NCBI GenBank assembly: GCA_001655205.1 | Contig: LPNZ01007402.1 | Span: forward strand, 1 to 64,000 | Length of the DNA stretch: 64,000 nt | DNA from: Lenisia limosa | Taxonomy: Eukaryota > Protista > Breviatea | Reading direction: 5' to 3' | Shown here: positions 17,747 to 38,494 of the stretch, in pieces | How the letters are laid out: each line of letters opens with the position of its first letter | How positions within the stretch are numbered: position 1 is the stretch's first letter | Notes under the pieces: generated by a model | The model's input: only the letters and a program-made list of their open reading frames with translations | Database searches by the model: none | What the model was told of the DNA's origin: nothing | Program-made: the position numbers and the translations under genes

Positions 17747-18639
17747 ATGGCGAAGCATCGTTAGTGACTCTTCTCTTTTAGCTGTTTTAACTCCGCTTTA
17801 GATCCCGATCTTATTATGTGCCGTAAGCAGCCAGGAATTGGTAGGGTTTGGAGTGATGACAGCTTCTCTCTGTCTTGATTGTCTAATATTTTGTAGCTGT
17901 TGGCCGCTTATGCGAGAAGTGTGATGGCAAATGCGTTATTTGTGATTCTTACGTGCGTCCTACGCTTCTTGTTCGTGTCTGTGACGAATGCAACTTTGGT
18001 GCCTCTCAAGGTGAGATCTCTTGCCTTTCTTAACCCTCTCTCCTCCTGCCATTTAACTAACTTTTTTTAGGAAGATGTGTCGTTTGTGGAGCCCCTGGTA
18101 TTTCAGATGCGTACTACTGCAAAGAGTGTACTCAACTAGAAAAAGACGTTTGAGGGGATTCATAGGGATTGATAGTTCTCATCTAAAGGTTAACCTTGAA
18201 AGTAAGATAAAAAGGAAATGACCAATGACATAAAGATTATGTTGAATTTCTGGTTCTGTTCTGCCCCTTTGCAAGAAGACCTGTTGTTTTTCTTGAAATT
18301 TTTATTAACCACTTGCGCTGCTGCTTATGTCCTCTCTACTGTGTTTCTTGTAATTCTAAGTGATGTTATTTTCTTTATTCAGGAGACTTGATAAGACTTA
18401 TCCACTTAGTTAATTTTCAAGGGCTTTTCTTTGGACTTTGTTTTGTTGTTCCCAATCCTTGTGTTGTCAGTTAACAGAGTCCCCCCCCCCCCCTTTTTTT
18501 TTTTTNNNNNNNNNNNNNNNNNNNNNNNNNNNNNNNNNNNNNNNNNNNNNNNNNNNNNNNNNNNNNNNNNNNNNNNNNGAATCTGGGTACATCTCGAGCG
18601 GATATGTTCTATGAAAGGAAAAAGTGGGGCAAAAAGTAG
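17747..18639 (+). CDS. PHF5A: SF3b splicing factor PHF5A/Rds3
   Basis: [81 protein letters not shown]|(gap)[19 protein letters not shown]. Confidence 0.97.
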
Positions 18640-18825
18640 TTAGTTTCTGTGCAATTATGTGTTTCTCTCTCTCTGTATTCAGGATAATACAGGCTCTATG
18701 TTTCTAACCAACTAATGGCCTTTTTTTTTTTTTTTTTTTTTNNNNNNNNNNNNNNNNNNNNNNNNNNNNNNNNNAAAAACTAGGAAACAAACGGGAAACA
18801 ATTTTTTTAAAAAAATACCATAGAA

Positions 18826-21408
18826 TTAGAGTTCATCACAAATGCGAAGGCCAACAAGACAACTGTCTGAGATGATGGGGTTGGGGTGCTTACTGGTTCT
18901 CTAAACAGTTGATGTACAACTTGGCAGTGGAGATAAACACTGTTCTAGAAGCTTCTATACCTTGAGACACTCAACGCATTTGACTCGATCATCACCAAGA
19001 GAGCAATCAGCAACACTGCCAAGGCTAACCGCACACTGTTAACGTGAAATCACATTCTTCTCAAGCCTCAATTCAATTACATTTTTTATCTTGATATTAC
19101 ATATTTTTAGGTTGGTTCACAAAACAAACCTCGTGACGGGAAACAGGGTGTTCATCAGGATCTTCAACCGCCTAAATAAAGTAAAAAAAAAATAGGTCTT
19201 CCAATGTGAATTGACATGTCACCAGCGAGCTTTGCCAACCTTTATAAGAACGTCTGCAGTCTCAGAGTTGGCCATCTGAGAGGGTAATAAACGGCCTACA
19301 CTATCCCAAAATTTAATCAGACACTAAAAAAGAACCACAAACCTGACCCATAACAAAAGCCAACTCATGACGGTACAAGGGGTCGTCACCCACAGGGCTA
19401 CGACCAAGCTCAGTAATCAAAGCCTAAAGTGTAATCAAAAAACAATGCTGATAATATTTTAATTGAACTTACCTGTGTCGCTTCTCTGGTATTGATATTT
19501 CTCAAGGCAAAGAGGGCTTCAAAACGCTATATGGTCATTCTTAAAATGGTGTATTGAACATAAATCAGATTATCTCTTGTTCCAATCGTCTCACTGTGAG
19601 ACAATGGGGTTTTTGACTAGTTTCAGTAACATTTATGCTGAAAATGCCTAAAAATGGTTTTGCACGATTTCACAGATTTACAAAAATAATTATTTGGCAC
19701 AAGTTCAACCACTATTTACCTTAAATAGACGGTAAAATGCCCAAAAAAAACACCCCAAAAAGACCAAAATTTCAGCCCGATTGAATTGGTACACTCGATT
19801 TTTTTATTTCCAAATGCGGTAGTTTTATCGGCCGGGCGTATATTGTAATCCTTATTAGGAAGGTTGGTTTTGAGAGTACCATTATCAAAAAATTGGTCAA
19901 TGTTTTCAAGGAATTTGGAACTACTGGTCAACTTTGACAATGACAAAGTTGTTTTTTTTCTTTTTTCTTAAAGCCATAGTTATTCTGTTAAGGCAGTTCA
20001 AAAGCTACGCAAAAAAAAGTGCCTTTAGATTGCTTTAAGACCAAAATCAGCAAAAGTTATCCTATTTTTAACAAAAAAAAAATACCTGTCTCAAAAAGAC
20101 ACTTGGGCCCCAAGGGATAGCTTACATCATAAGTTCTGCCTTCTCTGTTGATCAAGCAAGCTTCCAACTCAGCAATAGATCTGAGTAGTCAACCATGAAC
20201 AGTTCCAAAAAACTGTCAAGGTATTTATGTATTGTAATTGTAAAATTTGGTTAGAAAAGACAAACAAGTCTGAACAAACAGGTTCCCTCACCTTCCTTTT
20301 TTGACTGCGGGTGTGGGATCAACTGATGTGAAGATGGTGTTAATATCGTTTCCTCCATTGGCAGCAGTTACCGGGTTAGCTAAATAAATGATTATATTTA
20401 GGGCTTCCTTCTGGTCCGAAAATGCCCGGTAAAATATCGATATTTATCAAGGATTTATCGAGATATTCAGTCTTTTTTGGGACCATAGGAAAGCCCCAAT
20501 TATAGTAGATGATATGGTATGTAATCTATCTCATATTATAATTTTTCCTGAATTCAGTGGTGAGAGAAAAGCAATCAAGGTAAAGTAAAACCCTACCCTT
20601 TCTAATGCGCTCAGCAGACACAAGGCAGGTTGTGAGTACAAGATCTGGTCAATTAGTCAGCTTTAACCTGACCACTTTATACTCCTTCAAGTTAACTAAC
20701 TTGGTAGACCGTCACAAGAAAAATCGCTGTAATTTGATGTTGTGAACTCTAATAACAGACGGGCCTTGAAATGATTCATACAATATTGTAACACTCACCA
20801 CTCACCAGGAGTAGGTGCAACAGAGTACTTATCAAGCATGTCGAGGGTTTCAACGGCTCCAATAGCTCCAAGTGCCTCTGCTGCCTAAGCAATCACATCA
20901 CAGGAAAATATGTTACATTTTTGGCCACAGCTACAAATACAATTAAAATATTATATATCATATATATGTACTAGTGAGAATTTTGATTTATCTTGATACC
21001 ACCAAACCTCATGGCGAACAACATCATTTTCACTGTTGTTATCAAGACACTCACTAAGTTATATTAGAACTGATCCTCAACATTATCCAAATAGCAACTT
21101 CAAAGCATACCAGAGAGTTTTAATAGCCCGACTATCTCCCATCTGTCCACATATGTACGCAGCCTCATGCCTGAAGATGACTTCATTTCCGATATCGGTT
21201 AAGAGAGCTGCATGATTAGATACATTAAAGCCAGCCTACTATTGCAAAGAGCATCGACAGCGTGCTCAGATTTCTCCTGTAGAAGTCTAAAGAGATTGTG
21301 ACAACGTGTGGCTACCCCAGCCTGAGGGTCGATCAAGGTCTGACAGTCTTCAAGACTGAGGGCCCCAACTTTTTTCTCTAGGATGACTTTAATTAAATCA
21401 TCTACCAT
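18826..21408 (-). CDS. DOHH: Deoxyhypusine hydroxylase
   Basis: HEAT-like repeats with all four His-Glu iron-binding motifs (FRHEAAYICGQM, VRHEAAEALGAI, YRHELAFVMGQM, SRHECAVSLGSV), plus TSVDPTP, YDRFEALFALRN and a C-terminal DSCLVGL. Confidence 0.93.
20399..20498. mobile_element. MITE-like family A copy (diverged), in a DOHH intron
   Basis: tagggcttccttctggtcc...aatatcgatatttatcaaggatttatcgagatattcagtc...ggaaagcccca; same termini and core as 26655-26744 and 50334-50432. Confidence 0.75.
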
Positions 21409-21660
21409 GATGAGCAGTAAAAAAGAGGCAGAAACTGGCGAGGAGGGGGTGAAAAGGCATTTTGGATCTGACGATCGATAACCTAATACAATAATTATTG
21501 CGCAGCTGAATCGGCCTCTTTGTCTTGAAGTATATTGTTTCTTAAATTGTGTTGTTGTTAACCACATATACGGCTACCTCTTAGTGACTCTCTATCTGTG
21601 AACCTTGTTTCTCTTGAATGTAGCCGGCCTCTCAGCCCACTCTTTGGAAATCTAGCTCCA

Positions 21661-22062
21661 ATGGCACATATATGTAATCAAGGCAGGCTGGATCCACCTC
21701 CTTTCGCAGCCCCTGTCAATATCTTCCCTCGATCTGCCACTGGAAATGTCAATAAGACTTTAATATGGGGTGAGTTTATCTTCAAGTATGAATATGGTTG
21801 ACCAAAATAGGACTAGTTTTAATTGCTTTCTCTGCATTCCTCTTTGTGATTGGAGGGTATGCAATTATTGTAAGCAAGCTCATGCCAGACACCGGCAATG
21901 CAGTCTTAGATTATCTTAAGGTTGACAGGTTAGTTGATAATTGTAATTTTTGATTCTTAAACACTTAGATACTATGTTATAGCCATAGCTGCCTTGATGC
22001 CCATGTACTTTCAATATTGCCACGTTTACTGGGTTTGTCTAAAACTGTTTCGGCATGCTTGA
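21661..22062 (+). CDS. PIGY: GPI-GlcNAc transferase subunit Y (start uncertain)
   Basis: Spliced ...LIWGLVLIAFSAFLFVIGGYAIIVSKLMPDTGNAVLDYLKVDRYYVIAIAALMPMYFQYCHVYWVCLKLFRHA* matches the PIG-Y pattern (Y..+VSKL+P...N.+L..+..D.YY...P......W+..KLF+HA). Confidence 0.8.
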
Positions 22063-22251
22063 TGCCTCTTCTGGGAGTTATGGTATGTTTTGAGGGTGTA
22101 GGATGATGTTGTACGAGAGCTGTGTGGCCTTTCTAATGAGTGATTAGTCGTGATTTTGATGTATTTGTTGTAATATTCACAGCAGATATAAATAGCAATA
22201 ACGGTTAAACCTGTACTGAGTATTGATTATGTATGAATTGAAAAAAAATTG

Positions 22252-22331
22252 TGTTTTGGGAAATTGAAGGTTGGTGTTAAAAAACACCGTTGTGGTAAAA
22301 GGAAACACATAAATGGGAATCCGAAAAAGAG
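22252..22331 (-). promoter_or_regulatory. H2A 3' UTR conserved 80-nt element containing a histone-type stem-loop (22273-22288)
   Basis: 76/80 identical to 23312-23391; hairpin GGUGUU-UUUU-AACACC about 68 nt after the stop codon. Confidence 0.8.
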
Positions 22332-22356
22332 CTGATTAGATCAACAAAGGGAGAAT

Positions 22357-22731
22357 TTACTCCTCGGTGACCTTCTTCTTCTTGGGGAGAAGCTCGGGGC
22401 GAAGGTTGGGGAGGACACCACCCTGGGCAATGGTAACACCGGTGAGGAGCTTCTTGAGTTCGTCATCAGTGCGGACGGCAAGCTGGATGTGGCGGGGAGT
22501 GATGCGGTGCTTCTTGTTGTCGTTGCAAGCGTTACCGGCGAGCTCGAGAACCTCAGAGGTAAGGTACTCAAGGACGGCAGTGAGGTAAAGAGCGGCACCG
22601 TTGCCGACGCGCTTGGCGATGCGGGCGTTTCTCATGTAGCGTTGGACGCGAGAGATGGGGAAGATCAGACCAGCACGGGCGGAGCGAGACTGGGAAGCAG
22701 CTTTCTTAGCGGGGGCCTTACGGGGAGCCAT
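22357..22731 (-). CDS. H2A: Histone H2A, intronless
   Basis: [34 protein letters not shown]...[45 protein letters not shown]...[24 protein letters not shown]; strong C-ending codon bias. Confidence 0.98.
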
Positions 22732-22827
22732 ATTTAATAATAAATGAAGTGAAAATAATTTGGTGAACAAATTTATTTATAGTTTTTTTACTACCCGTAA
22801 ATTACAAGATAAAATACCCAACTATCG

Positions 22828-22853
22828 TTTGGCGCCAAATATTTGGCGCGAAA
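22828..22853. promoter_or_regulatory. Tandem palindromic E2F-type sites in the bidirectional H2A/H2B promoter
   Basis: TTTGGCGCCAAA-TA-TTTGGCGCGAAA gives four matches to TTTSSCGC across both strands, roughly midway between the two ATGs. Confidence 0.65.
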
Positions 22854-22949
22854 TGACTCTTAGAACATTTATCTTGTAATATACGGAGTAGTGAAAAAAC
22901 TATTTAAAAAATGTTTCTGAGTTGTTTTACTCATTCGAATTTATTCAAA

Positions 22950-23285
22950 ATGGTTAAAGCTGCCGATTCCGTTGAAAAGAAGACCTCTCGCTCTGTCAAG
23001 CGTACCGAGACCTACAACCGCTTCATCTTCAAGGTGCTCAAGCAGGTTCACAAGGACACTGGTATCAACACCCGCGCCATGGCTATCATGAACTCTTTCG
23101 TCCACGATATGTTCGACCGCATCGCCACCGAGGCCGCTTTCCTTGCTCGTCGTACCCGCAAGTCTACCGTCACCTCTCACGAGATCATGACCGCCGTCAA
23201 GCTTATCCTCCCCGGTGACCTTGCCAACCACGCCATCTCCGAGGCCCACCGTGCTCTCAACAAGTACACTTCCTCTTCCGCTTAA
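22950..23285 (+). CDS. H2B: Histone H2B, intronless
   Basis: [62 protein letters not shown]...[30 protein letters not shown]. Confidence 0.98.
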
Positions 23286-23311
23286 GTTCGCTTTTGCGCT
23301 GGGCGTCCGCC

Positions 23312-23391
23312 CTCTTTTTCGGATTCACATTTATGTGTTTCCTTTTACCACAACAGTGTTTTTTAACACTAACCTTCAATTTCCTAAAACA
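23312..23391 (+). promoter_or_regulatory. H2B 3' UTR conserved 80-nt element containing a histone-type stem-loop (23355-23370)
   Basis: Hairpin AGUGUU-UUUU-AACACU about 69 nt after the stop codon; basal pair is A-U here versus G-C in the H2A copy. Confidence 0.8.
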
Positions 23392-23759
23392 ATTTGTATT
23401 CATTGAATGTGACGGATTTGGATCTTCACATCCTCTACAGAGCATACAACCAGGCATTAAAAAAAGAAAGGCCATCATTATTGATAGAAAATTGTTCCAG
23501 GATCTGGAATTTTACCGTTTCCAAAATCTCCCTTTTTATCAGTATTTTTCTGCTTATTTTAATTTACTTTATCATTATTGTTTACTTTATATATCAATCA
23601 GTCACTATTTTGTTAATTTATCGCAATAGTGTATTCATTTATTTCTCTAAGACCAATTTCACGCATATTGAAGGCCTAATCATTATCAAATAAAATACAG
23701 ACAGTAGAACTAATCAATACAAGCAGGCTTTTACCTTATACGCACCTCAGTGGTGGAAC

Positions 23760-26700
23760 ATGGGCTGTGGAAGTAGCAAGTCTTCCAGTTCAGTAAATGA
23801 ACCGATTAAAAGACCAGAAGAACAGCAACAACAGAGGCCACCTCCAGGAACTCAAGTTGAATCAGGTTGGGTAGGCCCAGTGTCTTATTCTATAGACAAC
23901 AAGACCCCTCCTCCAGCCGACTCTGCTGCTTCTCAAGAAGCTATAGTGGAAGATGATTTTTCCGATATCAATAATGACGAAACAGCAAAAGAAACATCAG
24001 GTTAGCTCCTCACTCAGTCTTTTGTTTTTCATAACGCTTGCTTCAATTAACCCATCAGATGGCTTCAAGGCTCTCTTTGGAGAGGTTACATCAGTTGGAG
24101 CCCATTCAAGAGAAGAGAGTGGGTGGGAGTGTCATGATGTTCTTGGGTTTCTTTGACCATGTTTTTTGGCCGGGTTTGCCTCTTTTCTGCCAATCATCAA
24201 AGGAATGCACATAATTGAGGTTCCAATTTTATCACTCTGAACACTCAAATCTTTAAACCCAAGTAATTTGCTGTGGGAATATTATTGTTTTAGAATGATG
24301 GGGATTGTTGAAATTTACGCCCCCTAAATTAATCCCCTGTTTGATTCAACCCACACCTCCAATGGTATTATTTTTGGAGCCACTTTTTGGTTTCACGTTG
24401 CAGTTATGATGTCGTTCATCCCCCCATCCCTTGGGCGCATTGTTGCCAATCAGGCTATCAAACCGGCAACATGTATGTGTATTAGGCTCAATTAAATTCA
24501 AATCTCCGAGTTTAATTTATAATCCGATTGTTCTTCTGAATGCTGATTTAGTATTTGTTTGAGGGTTGCTGGTACATTTTGAATAAATGACTGTGATTTG
24601 ATTTTGAGATTCAGTGTTTCACCTTATAGTCAAATGGACAGGCGCCATTCTTATGGTTGACATCAGTGGCTTTACGCCCATTATGGCGACAATGAACTCA
24701 TGGGCTCGATGGGCCAAGTAAGCTTCCTCTCCAATACGCGCATTTCTTTTACTCTTTCTTTTTACCTACCACACGACCGCAGTATTATTTTGGAAGAATT
24801 TATTCTCTTTTCTTTCAATTAAGTCTATGCTCTTTACGACATTAGATGGCCCCGAATCCTGTCAGAGTATTTTGAGCGAATGATGCATTGCGTGTCATGT
24901 TTCGACGGCGAAGTTCTCAAATTCGCAGGAGACTCCTTAATCGTGGGTCTGGGTCAAGTTCGGTTCAACGAAGGGTTCGTGATTCACTTCTAAATATGAT
25001 GCGTTTTATGAAACTACTTCCTTTATGTTACATTGATAGGTTGGCTTTAAAGTCAAGAAAGGTATGGACGCAAATGAAGCGGCCAATAAAGCCTGTCATG
25101 CCGCCGCAGCCATCCTTTCAACTTGCGACAACTTTGTTCCTGATGAGGGCGTGTTGTGGGGGGGGGGGGGANNNNNNNNNNNNNNNNNNNNNNNNNNNNN
25201 NNNNNNNNNNNNNNNNNNNNNNNNNNNNNNNNNNNNNNNNNNNNNNNNNNNNNNNNNNNATATCGATAATTTTAGACGATTTATCGAGAAATTCAGTCTT
25301 TTTTTTCTAACCGAAGCGAAGCCCTAGGAACAGAGGAACAGTGGCTATAGTGTCAATCTGCAAATAATACTCAATCATTCCAAGATGTCGTAATGGGCCA
25401 TGGCTTAACCTTTTACCAGGTTCCGAGTCCACGCCGGGCTGACTTTCGGACCTGCTTCCGAGGTTATTGTCGGACAAGCTCAGCGGTTTGGGGATACTGC
25501 GGCTTCTTCCTGAATCCATTCGTCGTATAATCGGGCTTATCATGGTAGATTCGAATATTTCCTTGCTGGGGGCACCCTCGTTCGGGCTGGAGAATGTGCC
25601 AACACTGCCAGTTCAGGGCAAATCGTCACTGACTCAAGTATCATTGATTTGCTTGGTATGTCATTTTTCAATCTCAAAAGACAAATCGGTCATTGTAACG
25701 AGAACTTATAAAATGCACCTTAAATATCTAAATTGGATAAATCTGTTCTATGGTATTGTTCAGGGTCTAGACTTCCAATCTGAATTTTTAAGCCATGCAG
25801 ATGAGTGGTTAACTCTTCAGGTCCGGAAGCTTCAACCAAGGTGATCAACTCGCTCTTCATTCTGGATGTCACTGCCCTGCCCAACCCCCTTGAACCCTCG
25901 GCCATCCCTTCAATTGTCACTTACAACCCGGCACTCAACAACACGGTGCGTTTCTTTTGACTTACGCATCTCCAAAGACAATCAAGTATATATATGTACT
26001 ATAGTATATCATATATTATTCACATTTATCGCTGTTTTATTGTATCCCTTCAGTTCCTGTCGTTTGTACCGACTTGCATTCGTGCTCAAATTTCTGATGA
26101 TGATGATGTGACAGCCGATTTCACAGCTCTGGAAACGTGGGTGCTAATGGAATTGTAAAACTGCATCTTATTGACAAACATCCTTTCATTTCTAATTATT
26201 TCAGAAATGGGAAGTTCAGTGAGGTTACGTCACTGTCCATTATCTTCGCGTCCCTTCCACCTTGCAACAAACATCAAGATATTCAGGTACTTATAATATT
26301 TTTTGTCCCTTTTTTCACTCTTTAGAACTTGGTCAATGAAGCAGTCAATATATTGACTCAACTCGGAGGTGTTATTCGCCAAATCTGCGTGGATGACAAG
26401 GTAAGCAGCACCCTTTGTTATAAAAACTGTTGACACGTGATTGATTCTTCAGGGAACAATTTTAATTGCCGGCTTCGGCTTTGGCAACATGGGCAACCCC
26501 GCAATGAACAGCAAAAAAGCCGTGGTTGCCTCGCACCTTATGAAGTCCTCCTTCATAAAAAAGGGCTACAAGTGGGAGGGGGACACTGCTTTGTTCCTCC
26601 ATATGTAGTATTAGGAATGAGGATCAAATGGTAGGGGCTGGTATCACATACAGTTAGGGTTTCACTTCAGTTTGAAAAAAAGACTGCATTTCTCGATAAA

Positions 26701-29700
26701 TCTTCGAAAATTATCGATATTTTTCGAACCTAAGTGAAGCCCTACGGACAGTAATATTACTTCTTTTCGTCAAAGCACAAAAATTAGGTGCTGTCTTGCC
26801 GTAACCAATTAGGAACCCTACATTTGGTGTGACCAGTGGCCGGGTTTTCACCGGTTCTGTTGGCTCGTCATCAAGGAGGGAGTATGCCATGGTCGGACCC
26901 ATTGTCAACACTGCGGCGCGAATCATGACACATGCTGCCAAGAATGAAAACTGTTTGTGGCTCGGATACGGAGTCAATTAAACAGCTTGTAGTACAGCAA
27001 TTGTTCTGTCGTATTTTAATGACACCTTCCTCACTTTTAAGGCATCGAAGTGGACGAGGAGACACTTTCAGCCACTATGGAAATTTTAAAAGAGCCAAAA
27101 ACTCTCAAGGCAGTTACACTCAAGGGTGGGCAAAGCTTGAGAAGAGGGGCAGATGGGTGCTTTGTTCTAAATCTTAATCATGTACTACCTCATTATGATA
27201 TTCTAGGAATTCAAAAGCCACAATTGATCGGAGTGATCGGAGAAGTGGATGTGGACGTTTTCGACAAGTTAGACGCTGAAGAGGCAATGAATGAGGGTGA
27301 AGAAGTTCCGGTGGAGGAGGAAGAGGAGTACAACGGAAGTGAGTGGGAATTAATAATTTGTTTCAGGATCAAGGTATATCTCTTCACAGTTCAGTGAAAC
27401 GGAGGATCCGACAACCGGCATTCTCGAGAGTTGCCTCCGCCGCCGCCTCTCTGACAGACGTTGATGAGGTTTGCTCTTGGCGGAATTTTTTTTAATGGTC
27501 TAATTCTAAAAAAAAACGAGTAATGTTGAGGAGAAATCAATTTCCTGCAAGGCTAAATGAAACCCTAGATTAATGATGGTCAATTTGCATCCCAAATTTC
27601 CTCTTTGTGGATTAAGTCATTTGTCACAATCTAGGCAATTGAGAAGTGCGTAACCTCTCTGAAAGAAAATCTTGAGGGGAAGGCACCCCATCTCATTATC
27701 ATTTACAACACTGTGAGCGGATATCGTTGTTCTTTTTATTGGTTAGGGATGGGAGGGAATTTTAAATCATCTTGATAATATATAATATTAGTACTATATA
27801 TCATATGATATATAGTACTATATATCATATGCACTTTTTTGCTTTCTTGAGCTTACACCCATTAATACAGGTTTGTGAGGAGGCACAAGAGTTTATCACT
27901 GGTATTCAACAAGCTTTCCCGAAGGCAATTCTCTCAGGTGGGGGTACAAAGGGGTCTTTCTATACTTTATTTTCACATTTCCATTTAGCTTCCTTCTTTC
28001 AGCGCTTACTCACATCACCAGGCGGCACCTCCGCCCCCGGAGTTTTCAGTGATGCTGGGTACTTCACTTCTCCCGCTGCCACCGTGTGGGCTCTTCATAA
28101 CCCAAAAACCGCATTCACTACCGCGTCTGTAGGAGTATGTCGGGCTTCAGTGTGTGTCCACTAAATGTAAATAATATCTTTTTCTGTTTTTTTTTTGCTC
28201 TTTTCTACTCGTTTTAGTCCATTTGATTAACATTTGACCGCTAGGTTAAAGGCAGTGGGCCTGAAGACTACTTCGAAGCTGGCCGAGTAGTTGCCACTAG
28301 TGCTGTTGACAAGGTTGGCAATTAACACTGACAGAGGCGTAACAGGGCAATTGTACAACAATTCTGTGGAGCTTTTGTGATTCTTTTTAGGTTCCAGAGA
28401 GATATGCCGGATTGCAGCCAACCATTTGCTGGCTCTATAATATCCCGGGTCTTGATGAGGTTCGCTGATGCTGATTTACTGTGACTATTCTGAAATTGTC
28501 TTGACCAAATAGGAGGTGATGAAGGGCATTTTGAGCATTGTTGGAGAAGACTGCAAGATTGTCGGAGGCAATGTAGCTGACGAGGGGCTTTCGGGACAAT
28601 GTGAGTTACTTTTGACTAAGAACTGTACAATTATCAAAGCTCAATACACACAATAAACATTTGGAAACAATGACTATCAATGACTTATTATTATGTAGGG
28701 TACTCTCAAGTGGATGGTGAAATTCTTAACAACAAAATTGCGATTGTACTCTTCTTCGGAAAGTTGAACGTCAGATCCGAGTTCGAGACCGGGTAGGTAT
28801 GGGATGAATTACTATTTACATGATCCTGTGTTTTGCGTTTGTCTCCAATGAGTTGTAGAATCTTGTTTTTTTCTACATAGTTTTTGATAACGGACCCAGT
28901 TACACGCCGACAATCACGACGGGAGTGGCTTCGAATATGGAAGGCACCAGGCTCCTAAAGACGATCGACAATCGGCCTGCTGCCGAAGTATGTCTTCTCA
29001 GTTTGAGTGAATATCAATCTGCCTATCAAAATTAAATCTATCGAAACCTTTCCATTTTGACTTCTCAAGGTTTGGAATGATTGGACAGGTGGCAAAATTG
29101 GTTCTCTTCTAGGATCTGAATCCTGTATGTGCTGTTGATGTTAATACTCAGACCTTCTGCTTTTGGGTTTAGTTGAACTTCATTTCGGATAGAAGACTGG
29201 ATAATCGAAATACGTCTATATTTGATATTACATTCCTAGCATAACTATTCAGCTGGTGTCGTCATCAAACTTTGCGGCGCAGACCCTTTCATTGCCCCCC
29301 TCGGAATTCCCATTGCGAAAAACCCTGACGGGCGCGTGCAGTACCGTCTTGTCGCCCCCATGTCAATCACTCCTGAAAACGGCATTCAACTTGGCGCTGG
29401 CATTTCTGAAGGTTGGATGGGTGCCTTTACGCAAAGTATCCCAATGCTGTAGATTCTTCTCGATTTGTGGCTGAAAGTAATCTGATTTTTTCAGGGGATG
29501 AAATTTGTCGGATGGCAGCCACTCGTGACTCCATTCTGGAGTCCATGCTGAAGTTTTTGGGTTCTTTCAATAACGTTGATGATCTATGTTGTAACTTATA
29601 CAAATAATGACATATAATATGCATGTATTCAGCTGGTCAGGACTAACAATTCAGACACACTCGCGATATGATCAATAGAACACATGACTCTCGCTTGAGA

Positions 29701-32700
29701 ATCAACGCTGGTTTGAGGGACTTCCAACCCGTATTTAATCTCCCAAAGCCATTGAAGCTAATCGTGGCAAGAATACTGATATTTTGACACATCAGGGCTG
29801 ATCATGATCTGTGGCTTCACATCCTTCCTTCTTGGTTCTGAAAGGCTGAATAAGTTTGCCCTTGCCTGCGCCGCTGAGCTCGGCGTACCTTTTATTGGGT
29901 AGGTCGTCCTCAAATAATTATTTTAGGCACATAATTTTTTTAACAATTAGTCTCCAATTATGTATTGTATTGCGTGTGTGTATGTCATCACCATATCTCT
30001 GACCCCCCAGTGCTGCGGGTCTGGGAGAGCAAGGAACCTACAGCAACCCTGCTTGCGGCTGCCTCAATATCGCTGGAAACCTGTCCTATTCATTAACCCT
30101 CTTCGTGTATCCTGAGAGTGACCTTCATTACAACTCCACGGTCAATTCTAAGGGTATGGAAGTGAGGGCTTAAATTACATTTTGACTGTATGCCTTAACG
30201 ATTATAGCAACAATTGACGTGGATCAAATGTCAGTAGTGTCTGGACAGTCAAAGGTTTCGCATACTTCGCGTACCTCCCGCGCCTCACGCGCATCCAGAG
30301 CTTCCAAACTCACATCTGGCATGGGTTTGTGTGGTTTGAAAAAAATTGCCGTTTCTTTGTTCATCCTATGATGCAGATTAGCAATTTGACATTTTAGGAA
30401 CAGTTATCCGGATGGAGGAAGACAGTCTCATTTGTCTTGTCGCCACCGCTGACGGCTACGATGACTTCAAGGACGTTCTCTTTTCTCGCACTCAGTTGGC
30501 TCTTCGGGGTCATGTTTGCTCGCGTTTTTCTCTATATTGCTAACACCCCTAGGAAAGCCATGGAGACTGTAAGCGAATGTCGCATTGTCTTGATTCAACT
30601 CTTTGCCGAGAATCTCAAACAGGGACAAAAGGCGCTTGATGTAGGCTGTTCGCTTCCATCTCTTCTTTACTGCTGATTCTTCTCACTCCAAAGGATGCAA
30701 TAGAACTCTTTGATGACGCTTTAGTGACTCTGACTGTTGTACGTTGGGGTAACATACAATGCTTGTGACTTGAAAATGACTATTTCAACAAAAAGCATTT
30801 TGGGTATTACCGTTTTAGACTGGTAATAGCGCGTTCTGTACCTCTTCAACATCCCATGGATCTCTTATCAATGGCCAAAGTAGGAAAAACTGATTTGTAA
30901 CTGGTTTTCTCCTTGAATTCTTGTAATTTGCCCATCTAGCTGGAATTGCGTCAATGGTGTACATTGCTGGGCCAGACAGTGAGGCTGCTGCCGCCGCTCA
31001 AATTGTCAACCCGGATGTAGGAGGTTCCTTTTTTGGAAATCAACCTCTGGCAGATTTACGATTTTAGGACGAAGTCAGGCTGAAAGACCTTTCAATAGAT
31101 GTGGTGGGTTGGGAGAGATAATTTTAGGAAGCATTTACATAGTAGCACCGTTTTGATTCAGTTTAGGCCCAACTCAGCATTGCGGTCACTTCGGACTGTT
31201 CGGAAGCTATCCTCGCTCAGGTTCAGGAAATGCCAGCCCCACGAAATGTGATGGAATCCTACGATCCTGGAGGTTTGCTCTTGTTATCATTTTGGACTGA
31301 TTTATTCGTTTGAACTCCATACTAATATTATATATCACATGGTATTGATGATACTTAATGATTACTCAGCTACAATTATCTTTCAGCTCCGGTTGTTGGA
31401 GGAGTCATTCTCGAAGACAAGTCGGGAGTGAGGTTTATCATCAGCTCTAAGATCGAGGGACAGAAGAGGTAAGCCCTTTATAATCATGATAGTTGGATTT
31501 TTCGTATATTATCTCAATTCTGCCTGTCACATCTTCATTCAGATTGTTCTGATTTGTTTCTCCTTTTGAACTAAAAAGCCTGGACATATCATATCTTTTG
31601 GAGTAAGGGTTTCTAACTCAGAAGAGAGACTGCCAAATCTATGTCAGGCGCCTTGGTCACAATGCTAGGTCAGATGGAGTGACTGTGCTTTTAAATTGCC
31701 TTGTCACAATATTCGATGATTTTGGTAGTATTCATTGATAATGGAACAGGTGGAAGTGGGATTGCAGCAATGGGAGAGTTGAGTCACGGCTACGCACCTA
31801 CCGGATACGAAGCCTCCACGGCAGTTGTCAATGAAACCGTTAGCAAACTCAAGTGGGTGGCTAGTGTGAATTGGGGGTGACTTTCTACGATCTTTGGTCC
31901 CAAAAAGACGAAAAATAAACTCCTCGATAATCATTATTCGCTGATACTGCAGCCAACAAGCCGCGCTAGAGCTGTATGACCAATGGACTGGTGGAGTTTT
32001 CTCACCGGCTCTCAAGTCGGAGTCTCCCTCCAAGTATAGGGTTAAATGTTTTTGGACAACACTCAAGATCACACTATTTCTATTTATAATATCATTTTTT
32101 GAGTGATTATTGTCAATTCCTGCTTTTTTGACGGAAATGACCCCGAATTTCAAATTAAGTTATTTTCCTAGGAGGGCACTAATTGGAACCTGTTTTGCTC
32201 TTGCCACAATCACGGAGAAGACGCAGGTGGTCACAGCAGTTGTCGGTGCTGCCCAATTTGGTGAGAGCATTGGGTCACTGTAAACGTGAAGCTCAATGGG
32301 CAATATATTCTAACCTTGTCTAGGACTGATTACTGGCGTGCCCCTCCCCCACAACAAGAATGCTAGCCTTGTTGCTCTCACGTCCAACTTCTTCGCCACC
32401 TCCATCGGCCAGGTCCGAGCTTTGTTTCTGTCCATATATGATATAAATGATATACCGTGACCAGAATAAGTCTTGACCAATTTTCTTTGGGAAAATCACA
32501 TAGCAAATCGGTCAAGACATATCCCGGTCACTGTATACTGTATGATATGTTTCTGGTTCAGATCTAGGATAAGAGCTGACGGTTCAGATTTCGCGCCGTC
32601 TGGGAATGGCAAGCAGAAAGGGTGGAATTGCGTCCAAGGGTCAACAGAGCATTGCCCTCGGAGGTTGGCTTTTACTCGTTTCCTTCTCAGATCTTTATTG

Positions 32701-33062
32701 GCTTTTGCATCGGTACTAATTTGCTTAGGCGAGGCTGGGAGAGGAACATGCGCATCCACACTTATCTCACTCCCCAACCGGCACGCCTCGTTGATGTCCG
32801 ATAAGGACTGGACCCATATGAACGCCGCCCTTGCGAACAGCGGAAGAAGTGGGGGGGGGGATTCGCATGTCTGATCAAGAAAATGGAGTATAGTAACTTA
32901 TCATATACCAAGTCAAAGGGAAGACGATGGGTCTTTAATTCTGTAGATAACGCGACGCTTTTGATTGCGGCCCCACAATGCTTTGGAAGAGGCGGGCTTG
33001 GCTTTGGCGCTCCGGCAATCAGTGACCTCTGCTCTTTTGCCATGGCTGTTTCATGGAGATAG
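23760..33062 (+). CDS. N-acylated class III nucleotidyl cyclase (sAC/ADCY10-type C1+C2) fused to two FIST-N/FIST-C modules
   Basis: Reading frame followed across GT-AG junctions except at the N gap at 25172-25259, where continuity is assumed. MGCGSS start. C1: GAILMVDISGFT, ILSEYF...DGEVLKFAGDSL, FRVHAGLTFGPASEVIVGQAQRFEYFLAG. C2: SEVTSLSIIFASL, GGVIRQICVDDKGTILIAGFG, FGVTSGRVFTGSVGSSSRREYAMVGPIVNTAARIM. FIST1: AIEKCVTSLKENLEGKAPHLIIIY...ILSGGTS, EEVMKGILSIVGEDCKIVGGNVAD, GYTPT...TIDNRPAAEVWNDWTGG, LGVPFIGAAGLGEQG...GNLSYSLTLF. FIST2: APVVGG, HGYAPTG...KLNQQAALELYDQWTGG. Stop TAG at 33060-33062. Confidence 0.88.
25260..25326. mobile_element. MITE-like family A copy (left part in the gap), cyclase intron
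   Basis: atatcgataattttagacgatttatcgagaaattcagtc...aaccgaagcgaagcccta. Confidence 0.75.
26655..26744. mobile_element. MITE-like family A copy, cyclase intron
   Basis: TAGGGTTTCACTTCAGTT...AACCTAAGTGAAGCCCTA; ~18-bp imperfect TIRs ending in TA. Confidence 0.82.
32451..32537. mobile_element. MITE-like family B copy 2, cyclase intron
   Basis: 31-nt TIRs with 26/31 matches (TATACCGTGACCAGAATAAGTCTTGACCAAT / ATCGGTCAAGACATATCCCGGTCACTGTATA). Confidence 0.75.
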
Positions 33063-33120
33063 GTGTATGCTACCACGTTATTCCATTATTAGCCATAGTT
33101 ACGGATTATATTTTTGATAA

Positions 33121-33197
33121 ACAGTGACCGGGATTAGTCTTAGTCGACAAAGCTCATTTCCTACAGAACAATCGGCCAAGACTTATCGCGCTGTATT
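33121..33197. mobile_element. MITE-like family B copy 3 (diverged), just 3' of the cyclase stop codon
   Basis: acagtgaccgggattagtctt...aatcggccaagacttatcgcgctgtat. Confidence 0.55.
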
Positions 33198-33875
33198 ATA
33201 CTTCACATTTATACTTTCTAATTATTCAGGTATTCAGGAGCAGTATCCAAAATGTTAGGTTAGGAATTTTTATTATGTGTTTTTTAGGGTTTTTTTTTAC
33301 GACGTTTATTTATTATGTTTTGTTGTTTGTATTTATATATCCATATGTTATCGAAGCTGTTCATGTGTACAAATAGAGAATTTGGTCTGAGCCTTCTGTG
33401 CCTTCTGTTAACATTTGGTTGCGCTTGGGCTCTCAGGCGCGCGAAGGAGGGATTTGGGGTACTTCAACGCACACAATGATCAAACAAAAACCCACGACAC
33501 AGCATCCAATTTGACAAGAAAAATGCGCTTTTGAATAAATTAGGCTTGAATGAAGTAGTAATACAAAAGTGCAATTGAAGTGTTGTCAGTTGTTTTCTCA
33601 TACCGCAATCATAGTGTGTTCTTAGCTGGTTCTTGCATGGGAGAGGCAAAAAAAAAAAAAGCAAGTGAAGCAAGCGGCACAAGGAGAAGTATTTACACAC
33701 TTAATTTGGACCAGGGCACATATTAGAGGATTATTTTTTTTGAAAAATCATCATATCGAACTGAACAACAGTAGGAAGTTAAAATAGTCACAGTTGAACG
33801 TTAGATCTTTAATAGCTGATATCAAATCTTTCTTTTTTTGCTTCATTAAAAACAGAGCTTCCTAATTCAGTTATA

Positions 33876-36120
33876 ATGGGTGAAGAACATGTTGAAGATC
33901 TTCCTTCATCTCCAATCAGGGAAGAAATCCCCGAGAAAGAAGTAAAACCTTCTCTGAAGAGGAGACTTGGAGACGAAGGCTGTCTTGAGCCCGAAGAGTC
34001 AAGTAAATCAACCGGTTTGGCTTGTTTTGGGGTATTCTATGTTTCATTGCAATGTTCCTCTAATCCCTTTATCTCGTGGTCACCACTCCTTGGACTTTCT
34101 AATGCCTGCAGAGGTTAGTTGGTGTTTGCAAATGAGATTAGAGTGGCAAGTACCGTCTTTTTTGTGAATTGCTTTCTCTCTCCTGCATCATCATCACACA
34201 ATAGTTCCAACGCAGAGGTGGACCTCCTCCAGGATCAGTAGCTGATCTTGCCATTCGTCTCAGGGTTACAAAGGCCAAACGCGCAAGATTGGAACGCTAT
34301 TTGGATATGTAGGGGGGATTGTTTTCTGGAAGGATTATTTTTTCGATTTGTCAAGCTATATTTCCCTTTTTCTTTGCATTTCTAATTGTGCCAGTGTGGA
34401 AAATGGCCCTGCCCCAAAGCCTGAAACGCCTAAGAAGCCCCTCATTAACTTACAGACTGAAGATCGTGTGGTTAGTGGGGAGTAGTGCTTTGTGTTCCTA
34501 CTTATTTTCAAGGAATGGCTAGGAATTTCAATGATATTTTACGGTGTAGATCAAGGAGCTCGGAACAAAAGAGAAGACTCGCGGACGCAGACTTTTCGGT
34601 GTCCTTCAGAACCATCTGTCTGGCTTCACCTCAAAGGCTATGGAGAAGAGAGCTGAGGTTTGTTTGCAAAATGTCCTCTGTACTGTTCATTCTAGTTAGT
34701 GGTGGTTGTTTTAATTGTTGCCAGGCTGCTAAGCAAAAGAGAGAAGAAACTGAGGCCCGTTTGAATAAGAAGTTCGAAGAGGAGAAGAACCTTTCGATTG
34801 AGGAGAAGGTAGGGGGTTCTTTTGACAAAATGGGAGATATTAGTACTTGGTAGTTGAGTAAGTCATTGATATGGGAATTTTGCGCTTTACTTTAATTCCA
34901 AAAAAATGAAGTTATTTCTCAAAAAAACCCTCTCGATTCTTACAGTATAGAAACGTGTGGTTCTCGAGCTTATTGAAGAGGAGAAGAAGCTGCAGGAGGA
35001 ATATGAGGAGCGCTCTGCCATTCGCAACACTGGAATCCTGGTGGGCTGAATTAACACTTTTCGTAAACTGAAACCTCTATTTGAGGGTTATAAAAGAACT
35101 TTTCATTGTGTTAAGTGTTGAAGATTACAAATTACTGACCATTTTCAGAAGAACAAATGGACAAAACACCACCTTCTTGTTGCGCATTCCATTGAAACTA
35201 AAACCGGGCCTGCAATCAGATGGATTCCCAAGAAGCACAATGACGTTAGTTTTGATGATTGAATTCGCTTATTTCATGACACTTTTAGGAATCTTTGCTC
35301 TTTGTGTTTTACTCTTATAGGAGACTCTTGATCTTCTTGAGGAGTCAAGAGAAGCTCAGTTGACCGTGAGATACGTGCCTGCTGAAGGGTGGGTTGTTAA
35401 TGTAGCCAATTTTGGTTAACAAATGTTACCTTCCCTTCTTTCCATAAAAAAAATAAATAACACTTACCTTCATATTGTCATTTTATTAAACCTCATATTG
35501 AGGCTCTGTTCAAAAATACCGAGTTTCTCAAAATGACCTTGAAAGCGATTCCTCCATTTTTTAAAGATCTACTTATAGTGCCTTTTACCAATGGACAGTT
35601 CTCTCTACATCCATCCCCCTTCTCACACACTCTTTCGTATTATTTTATTATCGCTCTAACTGTCCCCCCCCCCCCTATGCATAATAATATTATCATAGTC
35701 TAATATCTCTTATAGTCGTGATGGAGAGATGACAGCTTCAGCCAGACACCACCTTGTTTTATTTCTATCTCTACATAGTATATAATATGTTGTTTATGAC
35801 CCCCCCTCCTTGAGGGTCTTTACCTTCTGACCCCGAAGGGAGACTATCCCGGAGGAGTTCCGCACCATGTACGAAGTTCTTGAGGACCATGACGCCCCAA
35901 CCGTTGTGTCAAGCCATGAGGCTCCGGAAGCGCCCGTGGTGAGAGGGGATACGGTTGCCTCATCGATTCTTCTTTCATGCAAGTCAAGATGATAGCTTTG
36001 GAAGATTGAACTGTTTTATTTGGGGTTTTTTCAACACAGAGACTGGTTTATTGTTCACAAGTCCAGGAAGACGAACAGGACAACGTTGACCAGGATGGTG
36101 TGGAGAGTGCCGAGGATTAA
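33876..36120 (+). CDS. PNN: Pinin/SDK/MemA-domain protein
   Basis: KEKTRGRRLFGVLQNHLSGF...KREETEARLNKKFEEEK...KNKWTKHHLLVAHSIETKTGPAIRWIPKKHND|ETLDLLEES matches the pinin pattern R.RR+FG.L...L..F and W..H...L...I.T.+.P.I.+.P.KH...T..LLE.S. Confidence 0.8.
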
Positions 36121-36385
36121 GTGTGTTTCTTGTACAATAGAGCTGATGTTCCCCAATCCATTTTTGATTTAGCCCATCATAGAGCTCATGGGAATCTTCA
36201 ACAGCCCCCTGGCTTATAACCCTAGGTCTGAAGCGATCCAGATAACGAAATACTAGAACGGCAATTTCAGTTATTATTACTCTTTCAAGACATCAGAAAC
36301 GAATTGAATCAATAAAACTACTCAACCATGTCATTGAATTGAATGGAAACGCAACAGAAACGTAAGAAAACGTATCGAACATAGA

Positions 36386-38494
36386 TCAGCGACGAATGAT
36401 CTTGTTTCCTTCACGAATGAACGCCTTGCCCTTCTTGCTCTGACCCTCACGATCATGCCGACGCTTCACCTTCTTCTTCTTCGACAAGCCAACGTGGCGC
36501 AACTGTTTTTATGAGCAAAAAAATAATAAATAAAAGCAATCAGGAATTTGCATCTCACCGCATTCTCATATTTGTCAAATCGTCGCTTGTCCTTCTTCTT
36601 CTCATTTAGATACATATTTAGAGGAATGGCAGCACGCTTTCGGGGCTAGAAAGTTAGGATAATACGGACACATTGCAATAAAAAGACCCCACAAACAAGG
36701 AATCCCATTTCAATTTCTTTCTTCTCCATGAAGCGATGATACGCCTGATTTCTCTTCCTGTTCAACATTCCAGCTTCCTCCACGTCCTTTGCCAACTGTG
36801 TCATTTTGGCCTCTTCCTCTGAAGGCTTCTCTCGTCGGAACATGTTAACTGGTTCTACACAATCAATCATAGAATAGACTCAACTTAGCCTAAGAAAATA
36901 AAGATATCTAATAACTATGCACAAATCTGAAAGCGCACGAGGGTTTAAAAACAGCGACAAACAAAGCCCAGAACAGTTGATATCAGACTTAATAAATTCG
37001 GAGTTTTCAGCACCACATCCATCATTTTCAAATTACAGGTTAATAGTATGGAAGATGAAGAGGAATACTTTCAATTTGTTGAGACAAACCTTTCTTTCCT
37101 TCTTGCTGCTTTGAAACGTCATCAGACTGCCAAGAGTTATGTCATCTCTTGCGAAAAACTCAAGCTGCATTTTATCATATGTACTATATAAGGTCTTCAC
37201 TTCATACTCTATCAAGAGCTTCACTTCATATGTACTATATTGCATCAAGGGCTTCACTTCATATGTACTATATTGCATCAAGGGCATGTGATCTTCGGTT
37301 CAAAAAAAGACTGAATTTCTCGATAAATTCTCAAAAACTATCGATATTTAACCAGACTTTTTCGAACCGAAGTGAAGCCCTAATTGCATCATCATATTTG
37401 TATGCATGTTCATAATATGAATGTTATAACGCTTGATCACTATTTCCCCATATCCCTTACAAAGTACATAGAAAACGGGAAATGATATCATACCAAAAAC
37501 GATTTGAGATCCTTGAAAGATGGTTTGTTTTCAACTTCTTCCTCGTTGGAGTCCCCAGTTTTCACTGTTGGGTCTGTATCCTTCACACGCTCAACCTGAG
37601 AGATTGAGAGTTGGAAACTGAGTATATTGGTACCCTTGAAACAAGCCATTAATAAACGCAAAAGATACCTGAATTGGTGCGGATAACTGCTTTGACGGTT
37701 TTGACTCTATCTCTAATTTGGCATCACCAGAGAAGACTGCATCAAGATCAATAGATCCAACCTGCCCTTTCTTTCTCACCCGGGTATTTTCTTCTACTGC
37801 ATCTAAAATGGTGTGAAATTTTTTAAAAGAGAATGTGCATTTGATAAACAACTGTTGGTAATCCGACTGCTCTACTTAGTACATCTGTTAGATATATATA
37901 TATATGTACATATAGTATATCATCATATAATGTAATATTTGATTATTTTTCTTTTGGTACACTCTGACTATCATTACCAGACAAACCAACTCACCAGTCG
38001 CAGTAGTTTGCTCAAGCTTCTTCCTCTCCTTCCTTCTCTCCTTCTTGGCTTTCTTACGTTTCTGTAACAGTTCCTTCTGTTCCTTCTTAGTATGTACTTT
38101 GAGTTCTCCTTCATTAGAAAATTGGAGCTCCACCTCTTCCTTTTGTGTGAGTTTTATCCCATCACTTGTCATATTATACATTAATATGAAAAGCAAAAGC
38201 AAGATGTCAAACAGAACTTCCCTCCAACTCGTTTCTCTTCCTCTAAGGAATCTTCAAATTGTTGTCCTGGGTAGTGAAAAATGACTACAGAGGTTTTGAA
38301 GTCTTTTTCCAAACAAACCAAGAAGGTTGAGTTGATCAAGGGCAGAGAGTGACTCCTTCTGAACTGGCTGTTTCGGCGCAACAATCTAAGTTATTGTCAA
38401 AATTGAACTCTAAGAACGCTAGACAAACCTTAGAAGTGCCTTCTTTAGACTTCTTCCTTACCTTCAAGACCTTTTTTACAACCTTTTTAACCAT
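36386..38494 (-). CDS. Lys-rich, probably nucleolar protein, weakly Faf1/C1orf131-like
   Basis: Spliced exons MVKKVVKK..., KELLQKRKKAKKERRKERKK, YHRFMEKKEIEMGFL|PRKRAAIPLNMYLNEKKKDKRRFDKYENA|LRHVGLSKKKKVKRR...KIIRR*. The family call rests on a loose resemblance only. Confidence 0.45.
37281..37382. mobile_element. MITE-like family A copy with a disrupted left TIR, preceded by 33-nt tandem repeats of the TIR
   Basis: ...cttcggttcaaaaaaagactgaatttctcgataaattctcaaaaactatcgatat...aaccgaagtgaagcccta. Confidence 0.8.

Follow-up and report, generated by a model that had tools for sequence, protein, structure and literature searches.

Here, we describe a gene of Lenisia limosa in which a tandem cyclase of the sAC family is followed by two C-terminal modules, a complete FIST module (FIST1) and a highly diverged, FIST-like one (FIST2). 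The gene lies in the window, by which we mean the whole stretch of DNA that was analysed (64,000 nt of contig LPNZ01007402.1). On balance we favour the view that a single nuclear gene encodes a cyclase, probably membrane-anchored, in which a FIST1 sensor and a degenerate FIST2 set the rate of cNMP synthesis. The combination of an sAC-type cyclase with FIST appears to be new for eukaryotes.

Gene model

The features of the gene are as follows, with positions given in the window.

23760-33062, + strand: complete gene model from a splice-aware dynamic programme, with an open frame of 1458 aa in 48 exons separated by 47 GT-AG introns
23760-23780, + strand: MGCGSSK N-terminus, read from the sequence as a consensus for N-myristoylation (Gly2, Ser6) and palmitoylation (Cys3)
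24472-25822, + strand: C1 cyclase homology domain (aa ~124-287), with Asp134, Asp182 and Lys178
25172-25259, + strand: assembly gap within intron 25156-25419, placed from the gene model and an independent ENA assembly
26135-27220, + strand: C2 cyclase homology domain (aa ~356-506), with Gln381, Ala452, Asn459 and Arg463
26655-26751, no strand assigned: second copy of a palindromic high-copy repeat, inside intron 26572-26812
27221-27468, + strand: acidic linker, in the last part of exon 27207-27338, followed by the basic/Ala-rich exon 27395-27468, with an RNA joint
27430-30125, + strand: FIST1, complete FIST_N + FIST_C (aa 558-974), by HMM and hhalign and partly RNA-verified
30210-30323, + strand: Ser/Arg-rich linker (..SHTSRTSRASRASRASK..), in RNA-verified exon 30208-30324
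30324-33062, + strand: FIST2, diverged FIST-like module (aa 1023-1458), with weak profile scores and RNA joints from 30494 to 32588

RNA-verified introns served to train the dynamic programme, which found 17 of 18 of these unaided. In the resulting model the open frame runs from the ATG at 23760, upstream of which there is an in-frame stop at 23691, to the stop at 33060-33062, and the 47 introns of the corrected model have a median size of 85 nt. A preliminary description of this DNA had proposed one spliced, intron-dense nuclear gene of about 1400 aa, with an acidic linker before FIST1 and a Ser/Arg linker between the FIST modules, and the model agrees with it on each of these points. The neighbouring genes are histone genes and one unrelated gene.

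The assembly gap at 25172-25259, which measures 46 nt in the independent ENA assembly, belongs to the palindromic high-copy repeat. This repeat contains stops and its remainder occupies 25260-25333, while at the second copy (26655-26751) DNA depth is in the thousands. The reading frame is kept whatever the length of the gap (..DEGV/L/FRVHAG..), and profile alignments pass over the exon boundary at aa 229 without losing a residue. Two candidate features were dropped during modelling: a mini-exon at 25317-25340, which sits in the repeat, and a joint at 30161/30255, for which the RNA-verified joint 30153/30208 was used. An alternative last exon at 33127-33258 was also considered, and a weak hhalign alignment tentatively favours the end at 33062.

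An sAC-type tandem cyclase

The cyclase part of the protein is of the sAC type, as the preliminary description had it. Residues 102-506 fall in one alignment with an HMM of sAC-like C1-C2 cyclases (138.6 bits, E 1e-44), a blastp comparison with the sAC-like protein L122 gives E 2e-22, and in the PDB the C1 exon and the C2 exon both match human sAC (ADCY10) best. Of the single exon pieces run through Pfam, which are short, only the C2 exon (E 5e-4) and one FIST piece scored. Exon 27042-27125 and the first part of exon 27207-27338 supply the last C2 strands. All four catalytic residues are located exactly where they had been reported, with the metal-binding Asp134 (24659) and Asp182 (24931) in C1 and the transition-state Asn459 (26907) and Arg463 (26919) in C2.

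The residues that determine substrate choice and bicarbonate control in sAC are another matter. At the two adenine-specifying positions of sAC the protein has Gln381 (26380) for Lys334, by transitive alignment through P0124, and Ala452 (26886) for Thr405, by direct alignment. Lys387 was considered as the purine-specifying Lys and rejected, since PDB numbering through P0124 puts the Lys334 position at Gln381. A Gln/Ala purine-specifying pair is unusual. The bicarbonate site of sAC we take to consist of Lys95 and Arg176; Lys178 (24919) aligns with the former, while in a transitive alignment Gly265 stands at the position of the latter, so that the bicarbonate-site Arg is missing. Gln381 and Ala452 make the product uncertain and, together with the change of Arg to Gly, mean that neither the product nor an sAC-like control by bicarbonate can be assumed.

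At the extreme N-terminus, the MGCGSS motif noted earlier as an acylation signal is present and, judged by the known dual-acylation consensus, the protein may well be acylated. The STAND ATPase/TPR tail is absent after C2, and that region instead matches FIST profiles, in keeping with the earlier proposal that FIST had replaced a P-loop/STAND-type region.

A complete FIST module and a degenerate, FIST-like one

For comparison we used a bacterial FIST reference set of 120 loci from a motif scan and a pair of HMMs made from bacterial proteins whose FIST domains Pfam verifies. FIST1 scores 49.6 bits against FIST from NosP-type gene contexts and reaches its best score, 58.6 bits, against the FIST part of a bacterial family of FIST-cyclases, with shuffled sequences scoring at most 5.9 bits against the FIST HMMs; the HMM E value for FIST1 is 2e-20. 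In an hhalign comparison the probability is 98.4%, for an alignment of 366 columns that takes in the N as well as the C domain, and Pfam FIST matches one exon piece alone at E 0.058. FIST1 is only ~22% identical to the bacterial family, and the C-terminal motif is GEQG where the bacterial proteins have GEI. Together, these profile comparisons support reading FIST1 as a full FIST_N+FIST_C module homologous to the bacterial FIST proteins of NosP context.

The preliminary description had claimed two FIST-N/C modules, and while this holds for FIST1, the second is degenerate. FIST2 resembles FIST weakly, though above chance: FIST profiles score only on its aa ~1188-1288 (31257-32010), and the GE motif has disappeared along with most of the family motifs. 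The HMM score is 11.8 bits (reached by 0 of 5000 shuffles), the hhalign probability 3% (P 0.013), and the Smith-Waterman score against FIST1 is 70, as high as which none of 1000 shuffles came (38.8 +/- 5.3). A HAD hydrolase identity, from an ESM Atlas search with a piece that included intron-derived residues, gave scores below 0.9 and was discarded as noise.

One transcript or two

At least 18 introns are verified by poly-A RNA contigs. The RNA record lengths match exons 27395-28134 exactly, the FIST1 joints from 28987 to 30207 and exon 30208-30324 are verified, and the joints from 30494 to 32588 in the FIST2 region are supported; no RNA joint was seen at the 3' end past 32663. Upstream, intron 27339-27394 is spliced in RNA, joining the linker exon to FIST1 through a 14-nt contig end that matches 27325-27338 and continues at 27395. 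The single transcript suggested earlier is therefore seen in part: the linker exon is joined to FIST1 in RNA, but the cyclase exons are without RNA cover, which is zero over 23760-27324, C1 and C2 included. The joints from C2 to the linker rest on frame and domain completeness. Both of them (26952/27042 and 27125/27207) are spanned by the C1-C2 profile alignment, so that the cyclase domain ends in the very exon whose 3' end is joined in RNA to the FIST exons.

That RNA cover reaches no further than 14 nt into the linker exon could also be taken to mean that the locus makes two products, a cyclase-only protein and a separate FIST-FIST protein. The former would terminate after reading through intron 27339-27394, at a stop at 27395-27397, or at a frameshift seen in RNA, and the latter would start at an in-frame AUG (Met546) that the splice creates at the 27338/27395 joint. 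The frameshift comes from the low-depth RNA contig that crosses the linker-FIST joint, which is missing one C at 27408/27409; such a 1-nt deletion would split the two frames, stopping the cyclase frame 19 codons on and leaving the FIST frame without a start. Against this, the FIST frame with the deletion is AUG-free for about 150 codons, and the deletion is found in 0 of the DNA reads at 27409 (DNA run, depth 42), the genome and this run both keeping the two parts in frame with no intervening stop. Two products would also require a transcription start within the coding exon of a gene on the same strand, whereas RNA depth drops steadily from 3' to 5' (17, 9, 4.5, 3, 0), a profile that resembles 3' bias rather than a start site and is as expected of one long poly-A-primed mRNA. 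We consider two products improbable.

Relatives and precedent

No orthologue of a FIST1 piece was found by an exhaustive phmmer search of 1.84 billion representatives or by a word-index search, which returned only an ORF fragment from the same genome and two low-complexity false matches. A scan of JGI metagenomes with the FIST exon gave zero relatives and, with the C2 exon, only bacterial sAC-like genes. None of these searches thus gave an orthologue that would show the fusion to be conserved. Our literature searches on FIST-cyclase fusions found none, in line with the earlier statement that the architecture lacked a characterised example.

The further claim that the wiring of FIST to a cyclase is new can be kept for eukaryotes, where it appears to hold, but not in general: more than 80 bacterial protein clusters have the architecture FIST-FIST_C-(HNOBA)-Guanylate_cyc (~690 aa), in Leptospira, Myxococcales and others. 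These proteins also displace the gene described here as the proposed analogue of H-NOX sGC, to which they are closer because of their sGC-like HNOBA linker. Since such bacterial wiring exists, and since the NO/haem idea has no sequence support, our finding is less surprising than first thought.

How might FIST act on the cyclase?

In light of these features, what might the FIST modules do? In the single-gene reading that we favour, we infer a single protein product, with an active site that its own C1 and C2 would form between them, probably held at the membrane by a myristoyl/palmitoyl anchor. FIST1 would be the intact FIST_N+FIST_C sensor and FIST2, a degenerate copy, probably its partner or scaffold. 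The likeliest mechanism would be that a small ligand or bound partner alters the conformation of FIST1 (or of FIST1-FIST2) and that the acidic linker relays this change allosterically to the interface of C1 and C2, setting the rate at which a cNMP, whether cAMP or cGMP, is made. That bacteria independently joined FIST to class III cyclases many times indicates that such a coupling is workable. A bolder version, which we put forward tentatively and think doubtful as a whole, is that a eukaryote grafted a bacterial-type FIST on an sAC core, and that haem/NO or an amino-acid-like metabolite, on binding to FIST1, directly switches cAMP/cGMP synthesis at the membrane.

One alternative is that the FIST modules bind proteins or act as scaffolds instead of sensing small molecules, recruiting a partner or substrate complex or mediating oligomerisation. 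FBXO22, the only solved FIST relative, is a substrate receptor, the FIST_N/FIST_C domains of the oomycete PsFYVE1 mediate binding to plant RZ-1A, and the loss of conserved motifs in FIST2 fits a structural role. We nonetheless think this unlikely, as bacterial FIST occupies an input-domain position, upstream of cyclases, GGDEF/EAL and kinases, and FIST1 appears nearer to this sensor-type FIST (49.6-58.6 bits) in a comparison restricted to bacterial FIST. To the proposal of the preliminary description, that the modules are NosP-like haemoproteins whose sensing of NO (or haem) would switch the cyclase, as a convergent analogue of H-NOX sGC, we give still less credence. FIST1 has homologues in stand-alone bacterial FIST proteins whose genes lie beside hybrid histidine kinase and GGDEF-EAL genes, the genomic context of NosP, and haem binding and a response to NO are reported for NosP proteins (PMC12570481, PMC8846402). 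However, FIST1 scores lower against this NosP-context FIST than against cyclase-linked FIST, its identity to the bacterial family is low, and the eukaryotic FIST domains studied so far (FBXO22, PsFYVE1) bind proteins. FIST ligand binding has been called poorly understood in a review, and the NosP/FIST literature that we consulted does not define haem-ligating residues. NO/haem sensing by FIST in this protein is a conjecture.

Significance

FIST is a widespread sensor domain whose ligands and signalling mechanism are poorly understood. Coupling to a cyclase offers an easy read-out, the production of cNMP, for finding what FIST senses, and the large bacterial FIST-cyclase family offers the same. 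If the protein described here is a ligand-gated FIST cyclase, eukaryotes would with it gain their first FIST-regulated cyclase for study, and it would give a handle on what FIST domains sense. Cyclases of the sAC family are best known for sensing bicarbonate, calcium and ATP; the present gene suggests that the sAC catalytic core can swap its regulatory tail, STAND/TPR for FIST. Eukaryotes and bacteria would then have reached FIST-cyclase coupling independently and with opposite domain orders.

Comparison with known systems

ADCY10 and the actinobacterial C1-C2-AAA_16-TPR cyclases resemble the protein in carrying a tandem C1-C2 in one chain, and the KFAGD motif (with the equivalent of sAC Lys95) and the Asp/Asp and Asn/Arg set are common to both. 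The sAC group, including 120 of the 120 best bacterial relatives, has a STAND P-loop/TPR tail where the protein has FIST1 and the FIST-like FIST2, and human sAC has Lys334/Thr405 and Arg176 where we find Gln381/Ala452 and Gly265. Unlike the sAC group, the protein also has an N-terminal acylation motif.

NosP shares with FIST1 a homologous FIST_N+FIST_C, as scored with the HMM of FIST from NosP-type gene neighbourhoods. NosP is a separate protein that acts on a kinase, whereas FIST here is cyclase-fused, probably duplicated and part of a eukaryotic gene, with histone genes and an unrelated gene as neighbours in place of the histidine kinase or c-di-GMP enzyme found alongside NosP. In FBXO22 and PsFYVE1 (FYVE-FIST), as here, FIST is part of a eukaryotic multidomain protein, but in both it recognises protein partners and in neither is it linked to a cyclase. 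No solved structure of a bacterial FIST was found.

The bacterial FIST-FIST_C-(HNOBA)-Guanylate_cyc proteins, examples of which are a Leptospiraceae MAG protein and proteins of Leptospira stimsonii, L. adleri and Myxococcales, likewise combine FIST with a class III cyclase in a single polypeptide; no paper characterising them was found in the literature. Each contains a single FIST module and a single homodimerising cyclase domain, which bears a GDaYM-type motif, and on C1 of the present protein a profile of their cyclase domain scores only 19 bits. Their sGC-like HNOBA helix has its counterpart here in an acidic linker, and their sensor is N-terminal, whereas in the L. limosa protein it is C-terminal, in the order cyclase, cyclase, FIST, FIST.

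Gene structure

Here, we propose that the plus strand at 23760-33062 holds a real and well-supported gene for a cyclase of the soluble adenylyl cyclase (sAC) family with a FIST-based regulatory tail. An ORF view of this region shows no long ORF on that strand; it is a patchwork of short open stretches, a pattern typical of an intron-rich eukaryotic gene. When one run of poly-A RNA (X1) and one of DNA (X2) were mapped over 26500-32499, the RNA contigs carried GT..AG joints at 16 listed sites, with 6 more implied by contig pieces, and the DNA run had no joint of this kind in the same interval. Two loose RNA contig ends match exactly 27325-27338 and 32588 onward. Splice-site matrices and a codon table trained on the RNA-seen introns were used in a dynamic programme over 23700-33300, which recovered, unaided, 17 of the 18 RNA-verified introns in a single unbroken open frame. 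One predicted joint was swapped for the RNA-verified one, a 24-nt mini-exon that sits in a repeat was removed, and the model ends at the stop at 33062, as in the preliminary description:

23760-33062, plus strand: gene model of 48 exons and 47 GT-AG introns (51-285 nt, median 85), 1458 aa

From 27395 to 32663, the lengths and binned depths of RNA records 1-5 agree with the exon coordinates to the nucleotide. The spliced gene of the preliminary description is thus borne out by RNA joints and by one continuous open frame through 48 exons. Directly upstream lies a divergent histone H2A/H2B pair (22252-23391); about 475 nt separate the H2B stop from the cyclase start codon.

The assembly gap at 25172-25259 falls in the model's intron 25156-25419. 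Exon 25040-25155 closes with ..DEGV and two further bases, and L-FRVHAGL follows in exon 25420-25485, so the reading frame is independent of gap length. An independent ENA contig of the same locus (L001; 55.8 kb, no Ns), found via an ORF fragment from the same organism (P0001), is identical to the window over 23700-25171 and 25260-38164 and has 46 nt in place of the gap; joined to 25260-25333, these make up a palindromic element. One further copy sits within intron 26572-26812, and the window has three more elsewhere:

MITE-like repeat (short and palindromic; ends GGGCTTCACTTCGGTT...AACCGAAGCGAAGCCC)
Window: 25260-25333, 26655-26751, 20431-20478, 37293-37382 and 50333-50433
L001: 7386-7505

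This repeat sits in introns, and DNA depth over it (X2) reaches thousands, compared with about 40 for unique sequence. Given these copies and this depth, the gap is a repeat-induced break within an intron, and the repeat caused at least this one gap. Aligned to tandem cyclases by profile or blastp, the model crosses the gap junction (aa 229) with a gap of at most one residue and shows no hidden exon there.

The independent contig also spans two further window gaps (18506-18578 and 18742-18774). Its positions 1-5850 differ from window 18775-23699 by 19 bases and 5 indels (99.4% identity), and it is 100% identical from 23700, which suggests haplotype or assembly variation limited to the part upstream of the gene. 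The gene calls stored for it (such as 7714-8319, window 25542-26147) read through TGA in a code-4-type prokaryotic style; they are spurious ORFs over exons and introns, and the database 'proteins' from this organism are therefore fragments such as P0001.

Cyclase domains

Pfam finds Guanylate_cyc on the C2 exon alone (E 5e-4). Human sAC is the best PDB match both of this exon (E 3.7e-5, sAC 380-421) and, weakly, of one C1 exon (E 0.37, sAC 73-103), with class IIIb bacterial cyclases ranking after it. Searching JGI metagenomes with the C2 exon returned two actinobacterial genes (L122 and L123) with two Guanylate_cyc domains, AAA_16 and TPR, the architecture of full-length sAC. The spliced model aligns with L122 over aa 130-476 (blastp, E 2e-22), and an HMM of C1-C2 from 60 L122-type proteins covers aa 102-506 in one stretch (138.6 bits, E 1e-44). 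Its alignment stops at ..KAVTLKG/IQKP, facing ..itvKGkagp of the family, which places the coding sequence of the last C2 strands in exon 27042-27125 and the opening codons of exon 27207-27338. Splicing of the intervening 27126-27206 is backed only by this profile alignment. Both this intron (81 nt) and intron 27938-28021 (84 nt) are in frame and stop-free, and retention of either would add 27-28 residues, leaving the protein unbroken.

The catalytic residues named in the preliminary description were all found at their positions: Asp134 (24659), Asp182 (24931), Asn459 (26907) and Arg463 (26919). Equivalences to sAC were drawn from PDB numbering and the alignment of an intermediate protein (P0124) to sAC, combined with the tandem-cyclase HMM alignment. 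At the C2 positions that we take to specify the purine, sAC Lys334 and Thr405, the model has Gln381 (26380-26382) and Ala452 (26886-26888); in actinobacterial sAC-like proteins the first position is likewise Gln and the second is Ser. Of the residues presumed to bind bicarbonate, sAC Lys95 corresponds to Lys178 and Arg176 to Gly265. With Gln381, Ala452 and Gly265, neither the substrate (ATP or GTP) nor bicarbonate control can be predicted.

FIST modules

Scanning prokaryotic genomes with a back-translated motif, G-F-Y-[ST]-Y-G-E-I, yielded 120 loci, nearly all encoding proteins of about 380 aa with the motif about 30 residues before the C-terminus. FIST_C was present in all eight proteins tested and FIST plus FIST_C in seven (E 1e-26 to 1e-56); L008, the remaining one, is cut off at its N-terminus. 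The genes downstream encode hybrid histidine kinases or GGDEF-EAL proteins, a NosP-type context.

An HMM built on 90 proteins of this set matches the first module, FIST1, at aa 577-802 (49.6 bits, E 1e-17; 2000 protein shuffles reached at most 5.9 bits), and the score rises to 58.6 bits (aa 558-942) with an HMM of the FIST portion of bacterial FIST-cyclases. With hhalign, aa 564-974 align to positions 16-392 of a 394-column FIST profile (probability 98.4%, E 7e-15), spanning FIST_N and FIST_C and reaching GEQG opposite the family GEI. Pfam gives a FIST match on one exon piece (E 0.058 against 24,736 models, the family having been named beforehand). The HMM and hhalign scores and the lone Pfam match establish FIST1 as a complete FIST module.

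The second module, FIST2, shares with FIST1 a 97-aa blastp match around the N/C junction (E 2e-4), with a Smith-Waterman score of 70 that none of 1000 shuffles reached (38.8 +/- 5.3). It scores 11.8 bits with the FIST-cyclase HMM (0 of 5000 shuffles, maximum 9.4), and its hhalign alignment is colinear, yet with a P of only 0.013. The segment around ..HGYAPTG..AALELYDQWTGG.. is retained and the GE motif is lost. Hence, of the tandem FIST domains previously claimed, the first stands and the second is best described as a putative, strongly diverged duplicate.

One protein or two

Might the cyclase and FIST parts be separate products? RNA is absent over 23760-27324, and the RNA overlap with the linker exon, 14 nt, is shorter than the mapping method's own bridging criterion. 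In addition, the contig with this overlap (depth 3) is missing one C at 27408/27409, a frameshift between the two parts that would stop the cyclase frame after 19 more codons and leave the FIST frame with no AUG for about 150 codons. This deletion is absent from the DNA run (depth 42) and from both assemblies; it is treated here as an amplification or assembly error or a null allele, and could also be a strain difference or something else.

Against separate products, the joint of the linker exon to 27395 is seen in RNA, and the same frame is open from cyclase into FIST. The cyclase domain finishes within exon 27207-27338, which is stop-free and closes at a GT donor. The final 14 nt of this exon, spliced to 27395, begin an RNA contig that continues through four FIST1 exons, and the single open frame of exon 27395-27468 continues both the cyclase and the FIST frames. 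RNA depth falls smoothly toward the 5' end, a pattern that fits poly-A priming of one long mRNA. A single fused cyclase-FIST product is thus very probable.

Comparison with known systems

What might the FIST modules do? FBXO22 is the only solved FIST relative and its FIST binds proteins, as does that of the oomycete FYVE-FIST proteins, another eukaryotic FIST fusion. NosP is described as a haem-binding FIST protein, no haem residues being defined in the NosP literature found, and a review calls the FIST mechanism little known. That the modules may sense NO or haem is an idea resting only on family membership, and the mechanism, namely ligand, product and coupling, is something we infer.

Among the 120 best relatives of the actinobacterial sAC-like protein, AAA_16/TPR is kept in all and FIST occurs in none. 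In bacteria, the Leptospiraceae MAG locus L008 (84-1472), one of the 120 motif loci, encodes FIST_C, an HNOBA segment and Guanylate_cyc, and a database search with it returned more than 80 clusters of proteins of about 690 aa with FIST, FIST_C, often HNOBA, and Guanylate_cyc (P0004-P0087). Their hosts include Leptospira stimsonii, L. adleri, L. ognonensis, Myxococcales, delta- and gammaproteobacteria and many metagenomes, and the members bear generic names only. Direct coupling of FIST to class III cyclases is therefore common in bacteria, and the novelty previously suggested for this wiring does not hold for the general logic; literature searches found no published characterisation of FIST-cyclase fusions.

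The architecture is built from known parts, its general logic being already present in bacteria, and the bacterial FIST-HNOBA-cyclases, rather than the protist gene, look like the closer analogue of H-NOX-type soluble guanylyl cyclase. Unlike them, the protist gene has the reverse domain order, a duplicated FIST module, an acylation motif and a sAC-type tandem core, whereas their cyclases are homodimerising and their cyclase profile scores only 19 bits on the protist C1. As a cyclase-FIST fusion, it is plausibly the first in eukaryotes.
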